A stretch of 63,883 bases of DNA, filler included, from Octopus bimaculoides (GCF_001194135.2; 4 parts of 4 records of this genome joined end to end with filler, not necessarily neighbours in it); one strand, 5' to 3'; numbered from the whole stretch's first letter, positions 38,538 through 38,945 are shown. Notes: generated from the sequence alone by a model not told the origin. Numbers and translations are program-made.

Positions 38538-38540
<3 letters not shown>

Positions 38541-38942
38541 CGCATAAGAAGGGATGACCACTAAGTGGACATCCATTATGATAGAAATAGACCATCTACG
38601 ATCAAATCATGAAATGTTAAGAAGTCATTCTCTCGAATGTGGTAGTTATCTCGAAGATATTCCAGTCGTGCCTTTAAGATTCTTCTCTGAGTGTAGACAT
38701 AAGAAACACCAAACATAATCACAGCTTTTTCGAAATGGTGTTCAAAATCAATTCCGTCTGAGACTTTGTGGTTTGATCGTAGATGGTCTATTTCTAGCGT
38801 AATGGATGTCCACTTAGTGGTCATCCCTTCTTATACGTATGTAATACAATTTTTCTGAATCTTTAAATTTCTCTTTGTGCTAGACCACTGGTTTTAAATT
38901 GGTGTTAATTAAATTAATATTTAATTTATTACCCTTATTATT

Positions 38943-38945
<3 letters not shown>
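38538..38945. mobile_element. (TA)n-anchored non-autonomous element with asymmetric inverted repeats carrying the XPD fragment (Penelope-like or Helentron-like)
   Basis: 38538-38606 and 38772-38840 are inverted repeats (66/69 identical). The right arm continues ~105 bp to a (TA)n tract, and this leader is homologous to 41826-41993. (TA)n on both sides. Confidence 0.75.
38612..38767 (-). pseudogene. ERCC2: Captured, uninterrupted fragment of XPD/ERCC2 (TFIIH helicase), region from helicase motif V toward motif VI
   Basis: Translates [52 protein letters not shown]. Recalled human XPD K603-F654 is [52 protein letters not shown], giving 42/52 identical by hand. No splice sites flank it; both ends abut repeat arms. 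Confidence 0.93.

Follow-up and report, generated by a model that had tools for sequence, protein, structure and literature searches.

A fragment of spliced ERCC2 mRNA between inverted copies of a (TA)n-associated mobile element in Octopus bimaculoides: a probable dead chimeric retrocopy

A locus of the Octopus bimaculoides genome carried 157 nt of the host gene XPD/ERCC2 between two inverted copies of a short mobile element, with a (TA)n microsatellite on each side. This is probably a dead chimeric retrocopy, produced in what was likely a single retrotransposition event by a small non-autonomous retroelement that ends beside (TA)n. The window, i.e., the whole stretch of DNA analysed (63,883 nucleotides, filler included), joins four parts of the genome, and the locus was found near the left end of the piece 38461–52377 (13.9 kb), a microsatellite-rich and non-coding segment with seven N gaps.

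Structure of the Locus

The left (TA)n microsatellite (38514–38540, (AT)13.5) was preceded by (CA)n and corresponded to the target or primer DNA on this side. The left arm (38541–38609, minus strand) was an inverted copy of the element body devoid of the 102-nt 3' module, and its outer end, ...CTTATGCG, abutted the (TA)n. The processed ERCC2/XPD fragment (38612–38768, minus strand) covered codons 603–654 and contained two exon–exon junctions. The right arm (38769–38843, plus strand) was a direct copy of the element body, directly followed by the TA-like stretch TATGTAATACA (38838–38848, plus strand). The 3' module, or tail (38844–38945, plus strand, 102 nt), was present on the right side only and consisted of ...TGCTAGACCACTGGT, an AT-rich hairpin closed by GGT/ACC, and CCTTATTATTTAAA, beyond which the right (TA)n microsatellite started (38946–38992, (AT)23.5). 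Read on the minus strand, the order was tail and right arm (both as reverse complements), XPD in sense, left arm in sense, and (TA)n. The XPD fragment shared the sense of the tail-less left arm, and the right arm with its 3' module ran antisense to it. A target-site duplication was unreadable inside (TA)n.

The repeat search delimited the inverted repeat as 38535–38609 against 38769–38843 (75 nt, 93% complementary, with a spacer of 159 nt). The two arms differed at 5 of the 75 positions, which corresponds to approximately 3.3% per arm. A previous reading of the sequence without database searches, hereafter the sequence-only reading, had described 69-bp inverted repeats with three mismatches; the repeats were indeed present, and the alignment recount gave four mismatches for this 69-bp core (38541–38609 against 38769–38837). 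The homology of the left arm may extend to position 38616 through the ambiguous segment TTTCATGA. Each arm also contained a 23-nt near-palindrome, GGATGTCCACT-T-AGTGGTCATCC (38808–38830, mirrored at 38548–38570), reading GGATGTCCACTTAGTGGTCATCC inside the right arm and lost in the sister copy described below. Palindromes within the pseudo-LTRs of Penelope-like elements (PLEs) are mentioned in PMC3846280.

The arm–XPD–arm structure was confirmed and is far beyond chance. It lies 77 nt away from the edge of the piece, and the assembly contains many N gaps, which could recall an artefact, either a fold-back contig end or cDNA contamination. The arms differed at four to five positions around a unique spacer, unlike fold-back artefacts, and the eight private substitutions of the fragment (see below) are at odds with cDNA contamination. 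An artefact or a genuine spliced exon of the functional gene, the latter being considered in the next section, is together an extremely improbable account of the locus.

Identity and Spliced Origin of the XPD Fragment

The minus-strand translation of the spacer matched human XPD 602–655 (E 2e-23) and XPD 603–654 of Octopus vulgaris (88% identity). The O. vulgaris protein (P0158) was retrieved with a profile of four gastropod XPDs; a human XPD bait into which the fragment had been inserted yielded no octopus sequence among the best 120 matches. The ERCC2 loci of O. vulgaris (L001), O. bimaculoides (L002), O. sinensis (L003) and Argonauta (L004) were then compared with the fragment. Its DNA identity to the ERCC2 exons of the three Octopus species was 92–93%, and approximately 80% to Argonauta ERCC2. 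The host XPD/ERCC2 identity that the sequence-only reading had assigned to the fragment was thereby established from human and octopus XPD as well as from the octopus exons.

In O. vulgaris the homologous sequence was distributed over three exon segments, at positions 47528–47553, 49156–49228 and 51665–51730 of L001 (92.3%, 91.8% and 92.4% identity to the fragment, respectively). The first intron interrupted codon 611 (phase 1, 1603 bp, GATTTTG/GTAAGT...TTTCAG/AGCACC) and the second was located after K634 (2439 bp, TTAAAG/GTATGT...TTGCAG/GCGCGG), both with canonical ends. O. sinensis ERCC2 had the same three-exon layout, as did O. bimaculoides ERCC2, in which two exons were matched by blastn and the first exon was read directly. 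In Argonauta, both introns were at identical positions. The window was seamless across the two parental intron positions (GATTTTGAACACC and TTAAAGGCACGA). The introns at codon 611 and after K634, given for the human gene in the sequence-only reading, were thus verified in three Octopus species and in Argonauta, and the residues GIDF-E and ILK-A, contiguous in the window as it had noted, are separated by introns in all these parental genes. It had proposed a search for the parental ERCC2 and its intron positions; the gene was found with its introns, which supports the mRNA origin. Short public XPD gene models of animals (P0005, P0006, P0008 and P0009) were observed to read through an intron at PYQ/YTE and after SRILK. 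These models show that the K634 intron position is widespread and that they are themselves mis-predicted.

Both ends of the fragment fell within exons and not at exon boundaries, and no splice sites were present there, in agreement with the earlier description; one of the ends was at codon ~654/655, inside an exon and without poly(A). The absence of both parental introns shows that the fragment is a copy of the spliced ERCC2 mRNA. The retention of the Octopus-specific residues E611, N643 and Y644, together with the 92–93% identity to Octopus against approximately 80% to Argonauta, designates the host lineage's own ERCC2 as the donor. As judged from these gene comparisons, the insert was copied from a spliced ERCC2 mRNA of the Octopus lineage and is internal to the transcript. 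A genuine exon of the functional ERCC2 was rejected, the parental gene with its introns being located elsewhere; in addition, the fragment ends lack splice sites, and no other part of XPD was detected by tblastn in the piece 38461–52377.

Decay and Age of the Fragment

Over the 157 aligned bases, the fragment showed eight private substitutions (5.1%), of which seven were non-synonymous and one was synonymous. The non-synonymous changes were E606D, G615E (two bases), R616K, P624S, S630R and Q645H. Seven of the eight private substitutions thus hit amino acids that do not vary among the XPD genes of the three Octopus species. The first four had already been listed in the sequence-only reading and were found again against the octopus parent; D655H, from the same list, lies in the ambiguous junction, whereas S630R and Q645H were absent from it. 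In the same region, the O. bimaculoides and O. vulgaris parents differed at eight synonymous sites and at no non-synonymous site (7:1 against 0:8, Fisher p ~0.0007, hand calculation). This opposition indicates that the fragment is unconstrained. On these substitution counts, the XPD fragment is a dead copy drifting by neutral decay, which bears out what had been supposed from its altered residues.

On the octopus transposable element clock, a Jukes–Cantor (JC) distance of 0.09 corresponds to approximately 25 My, and the split between O. bimaculoides and O. vulgaris is placed at 13–33 My (PMC13282606). The observed drift of about 5% would then correspond to roughly 15 My, near this split. At the eight parental synonymous sites, the fragment agreed with O. 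bimaculoides at four and with O. vulgaris at four. When the eight differences were polarised with Argonauta, the signals were mixed and did not date the capture as earlier or later than the split. The divergence of the arms (~3.3% per arm) is in keeping with an origin of the insert and the two arms in one event.

The Mobile Element and Its Relatives

A sister copy of the element, composed of one arm and the 3' module without XPD, was present at ~41826–41998 (minus strand), with 72% identity over 139 nt. The sequence-only reading had pointed to such a copy at 41.98 kb, and both the arm and the tail were found there, with the leader CTTCGTGG. The alignments showed the arm and tail to be contiguous, and the copy ended with ...ACCCTTATTATTAAATTTTAAATATG / ...ACCCTTATTATTAAA, adjoining (TATG)n, a TA-rich repeat. 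As the sister copy possesses a single arm contiguous with the tail, the unit consists of arm plus tail (~180 nt), which excludes that the arms are the terminal inverted repeats of a DNA transposon. Upstream of the sister leader, 118 nt (41994–42111, minus strand) were unlike the XPD-bearing copy and reached a 10-N gap, followed by a CA-rich repeat. This segment could be a longer 5' region of the family, flanking DNA, or some other captured sequence.

The boundaries of the unit bear on the possibility of a Pack-type DNA transposon or MITE, in which the 75-bp arms would be terminal inverted repeats with a TA duplication and XPD would have been acquired between them. The inverted repeats are flanked by TA and the internal host fragment recalls Pack-MULEs. 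The 102-nt tail beyond the right arm is, however, conserved in the one-armed sister, which means that the arms are not termini, and the captured DNA is intron-less whereas capture at the DNA level keeps introns. Furthermore, the Pack-type capture put forward in the sequence-only reading implies an amplified chimera, and no second copy was found. Next to no weight can be given to this origin. Helitrons are recognised by a 5' TC, a 3' CTRR with a subterminal hairpin, and insertion between A and T. The 5' TC and 3' CTRR ends were absent here (termini CGCATAAG... and ...TTATTATTTAAA), and a Helitron was rejected.

An nhmmer profile built from three arm/tail copies was run against 255 kb of octopod ERCC2 loci, in which the only match was a distant relative of the last ~110–135 nt, located beside (TA)n within an intron of the ERCC2 gene in both O. 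vulgaris and O. sinensis (L001 41541–41930 and L003 43790–44180, both on the minus strand). This intronic relative of the 3' module was attached to a different body, a SINE-like core ending with (GAT)n. It read ...ATATGSTAGGCCACTGGTAGTAA...TTTATTACCCTGAT, and a weak arm-like stretch was visible on its 5' side. Being upstream of the captured exons and antisense to them, it cannot explain the chimera by read-through, and its presence within ERCC2 is probably a coincidence. In the shared 3' module, TGCTAGRCCACTGGT preceded the AT-rich hairpin with its GGT/ACC closure, after which came CCTKAT and (TA)n. The support for the hairpin is thin, as it comes from four sequences of which two are orthologous. 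The 3' module with its GGT/ACC-closed hairpin was common to two or three families. A shared 3' module is a hallmark of non-autonomous retroelements that borrow the reverse transcriptase of a partner.

The unit itself gave few matches in the collections searched. No remnant of a reverse transcriptase (RT) or of a GIY-YIG endonuclease was detected in the 13.9-kb piece, and the only Pfam match in the less repetitive reading frames was a partial Helicase_C_2 corresponding to XPD. A search of the whole piece with Rfam gave no hammerhead ribozyme at E ≤ 1, the only matches being generic hairpin or microsatellite "miRNA" models below threshold, and ARAGORN detected no tRNA-like head. The 30-aa peptide encoded by the arm had no match among 1.84 billion representatives (phmmer), and strings of the element sequence had no match in the full-text literature.

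Two other repeated structures were observed in the piece. A near-perfect 130-bp palindrome (39140–39269), with 62-nt arms 98% complementary around a 6-nt loop and the ends TTAAGATAGG... / ...CCTATCTTAA, is possibly a foldback or MITE-like element; its only Rfam matches were generic plant MIR hairpins below threshold. Five partial repeat copies with a tRNA B-box-like motif (GGTTCGATTCCC / GGTTCCCGGA) occupied positions 45696–46396, and a two-copy direct repeat of 192 nt (75%) was found at 45897–46088 and 46268–46459. These repeats look like copies of a tRNA-derived octopus SINE.

Junctions and Proposed Insertion Mechanism

At the right junction (38764–38768), CTTTG was common to the antisense XPD sequence and to the 5' leader of the element. 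The parental XPD reads GGCAAAG, and the leader is CTTTGTGG here and CTTCGTGG in the sister copy, which leaves a microhomology of 3–5 nt. The sequence-only reading had noted an aaag overlap at this joint; alignment of the parent and the leader confirmed it, as CAAAG. At the left junction (38608–38616), the minus strand read XPD ...ACA, then TTTCATGA, then the arm TTTGATCG. The eight nucleotides of TTTCATGA may belong to XPD, with 6/8 positions matching TTTGATGC, or to the leader, with 5/8 matching CTTCGTGG and only transitions among the differences.

Both arms stopped at the same element position, or within 8 nt of it. This shared stop may mark the 5' end of the element RNA, where it would be expected; two truncations at the same place would be an odd coincidence. 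At its other end, the right copy continued, from the position matching the left-arm end, into the TA-like TATGTAATACA, which we infer to be the internal site where a (TA)n DNA end primed the left inverted copy. The passenger co-oriented with the left arm, the microhomology at the joint, and joints that are not at splice sites all fit template switching. An origin by reverse transcriptase template switch or a twin-priming-like process, already suggested in the sequence-only reading, is the most economical reading of the locus, given the orientation of XPD with the left arm and the joint microhomology.

We propose the following sequence of events. The (TA)n site would first be cut. The bottom-strand end would prime a first cDNA on the 3' end of the element RNA and copy it up to the 5' leader (...CCACAAAG-3'). 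The top-strand (TA)n end would prime on the TA-like UAUGUAAUA, which directly follows the body on its 3' side, using either the first element RNA or another one, and the body would be copied. The enzyme would then jump onto the ERCC2 mRNA near codon 655 and copy 157 nt toward its 5' end. Annealing of CTTTG with CAAAG at the end of the first cDNA would allow the second strand to be completed, and the outcome would be arm (inverted)–XPD–arm–tail. Each of these steps, i.e., twin priming, template switching and microhomology-mediated joining, is documented for LINEs (PMC13174262, PMC2104539).

Several features of the junctions could also be produced by repair at the DNA level, in which a break at a single element copy near (TA)n would be filled with stray ERCC2 cDNA, and fold-back or template switching at microhomologies would produce a second, inverted copy of the adjacent arm. 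Microsatellites are fragile, and the short microhomologies at both junctions and the TA-like stretch at the outer end of the left arm also fit microhomology-mediated repair. The capture of cDNA at breaks is established, both for Ty1 cDNA in yeast and in endonuclease-independent L1 insertion. Repair would nevertheless require three rare steps at one site, and the XPD fragment runs in the same direction as the left arm, just as it would in a continuous cDNA. Inverted adjacent copies are, on the other hand, routine in PLE insertion (PMC8557442, PMC3846280). We therefore hold a repair origin to be unlikely.

Two independent insertions in the same (TA)n hotspot would offer another route, with a chimera of XPD and arm inserted first on the minus strand, and a plus-strand copy later added head to head. 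(TA)n is a preferred and reusable target, and the two halves are separable in principle. No remnant of (TA)n was present between the halves, which instead abutted with a 5-nt overlap, and the left half was without the 3' module expected of a normal insertion. The difference between the arms (5/75) also matches the private divergence of the fragment (5.1%). Two insertions are on these grounds quite unlikely, and template switching during one retrotransposition event is retained below.

Source of the Reverse Transcriptase

From the architecture of the locus alone, the enzyme came most likely, by a modest preference, from a (TA)n-targeting Penelope-like element of the Naiad type. The main alternative is a LINE partner recognising the 3' stem-loop, and a SINE that depends on a LINE and carries a 3' stem-loop and a TA tail would fit about as well as a Penelope-like element. 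Naiads show a (TA)n bias, are present in Octopus spp., produce inverted 5'-truncated copies and have no hammerhead, and non-autonomous Naiad/PLE derivatives with common 3' ends are known (PMC8557442). PLE insertions can also have one pLTR that is inverted and shorter, may carry a tail at one of their ends, and can enclose captured host sequence between the pLTRs (PMC3846280).

The octopus locus shared several of these features. Both flanks were (TA)n, and the relative of the 3' module abutted (TA)n in L001 and L003. An inverted adjacent copy (the 75-nt arm) was present, with a tail on the right only. An ORF for RT and GIY-YIG, expected of a PLE, was not found within the piece. The hammerhead of canonical PLEs was also absent, which is not exclusive since Naiads are without it as well. 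All the copies seen amounted to one diverged sister and one distant relative, and none of them was an autonomous partner.

The locus thus resembles the complex PLE insertions (Arkhipova et al. 2013, PMC3846280; Craig et al. 2021, PMC8557442) by its association with (TA)n, by the adjoining shorter inverted copy of the 3' part of the element, by the extension at one end, and by the foreign sequence between the repeats. It further resembles Naiads, which are documented in Octopus spp., by the absence of a hammerhead (PMC8557442). It differs in that the octopus unit is without an RT or GIY-YIG ORF, and in the length of the one-sided tail, 102 nt compared to 30–40 bp for PLE tails. The PLE captures in A. 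vaga kept introns (NRPS gene), whereas the octopus insert is spliced and 157 nt long.

Comparison with Other Chimeras and Retrocopies

The chimeras formed by LINE template switching (U6/L1, mRNA/L1, and the tripartite Magnaporthe elements; PMC2104539, PMC13174262) associate a 5' cellular RNA with a 3' retroelement in the same orientation, and share with this locus a junction located away from splice sites. Double template jumps are also documented among them (PMC2104539, PMC13174262). In contrast, the octopus locus has no poly(A), no L1-type target-site duplication (TSD) and no EN motif; it involves a short (TA)n-associated cephalopod unit and is closed by a second, inverted copy of the element. 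Twin priming has been invoked for mRNA/LINE-1 chimeras in antisense orientation, and template switching for those in sense (PMC13174262). The likeness to L1 twin priming lies in two reverse transcriptions starting from both ends of the break, the second priming internally by microhomology, and in a microhomology-mediated joining that leaves inverted segments and an antisense passenger RNA. L1 twin priming was reportedly described by Ostertag and Kazazian in 2001. It is discussed in PMC13174262. Classical twin priming, however, inverts a different (upstream) part and does not yield a 75-bp inverted repeat of the same segment.

Like processed pseudogenes, the fragment is an intron-less copy of a host mRNA in neutral decay; unlike them, it is an internal 157-nt piece without 3' UTR or poly(A), included in a transposable element insertion. 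Pack-MULEs and Helitrons also carry a host gene fragment between transposon-derived repeats. Their captures take place on DNA, retain introns and lead to amplification of the fragment, whereas here the fragment is spliced and apparently single-copy and the arms are non-terminal. The locus adds a new example to a known kind of chimeric retrocopy.

Coding Potential, Hairpin RNA and Significance

The 82-aa chimeric ORF announced by the sequence-only reading was present on the minus strand (38576–38824), running through arm, XPD and arm. By exact look-up, it was absent from public assemblies, and the matches listed for its homologues contained only short fragments of XPD gene models, with no copy of the chimera and no close homologue. 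With seven non-synonymous private changes for one synonymous, it showed no purifying selection. The ORF is incidental: both arm frames happen to be open, and the insert between them is in frame.

The sequence-only reading had also envisaged the hairpin as a regulatory or small-RNA source. As a functional RNA gene, its stem of ~78 bp would give small RNAs, or its antisense XPD loop would regulate ERCC2. The predicted fold reached -161.5 kcal/mol (z = -15), and a plus-strand transcript would hold 157 nt antisense to ERCC2 with 92% identity. Any inverted repeat folds in this way, though, and the sequence drifts neutrally. XPD moreover lies in the loop and not in the stem, so that small RNAs derived from the stem would hit the element rather than ERCC2. 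The regulatory role is unsupported by these results, and a functional hairpin is barely conceivable. No function of the locus is indicated. A bolder scenario, in which the (TA)n retroelement machinery of octopus, probably Naiad-type, would routinely catch host mRNA at inversion joints and shuffle gene fragments, and in which an antisense XPD hairpin RNA would here feed into the control of ERCC2, appears highly unlikely.

As far as the evidence here goes, the locus has no bearing on octopus DNA repair. For annotation it serves as a warning, with a strong XPD match and an ORF of 82 codons, yet no gene. Penelope-like and microsatellite-targeting retroelements are without an in vitro system (PMC8557442), and natural accidents are consequently among the few records of how such reverse transcriptases behave. 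In this locus, the trace of priming from two ends and of a jump onto a cellular mRNA can be read from how the segments are ordered and oriented, from the TA-like site of internal priming, and from the short overlaps.
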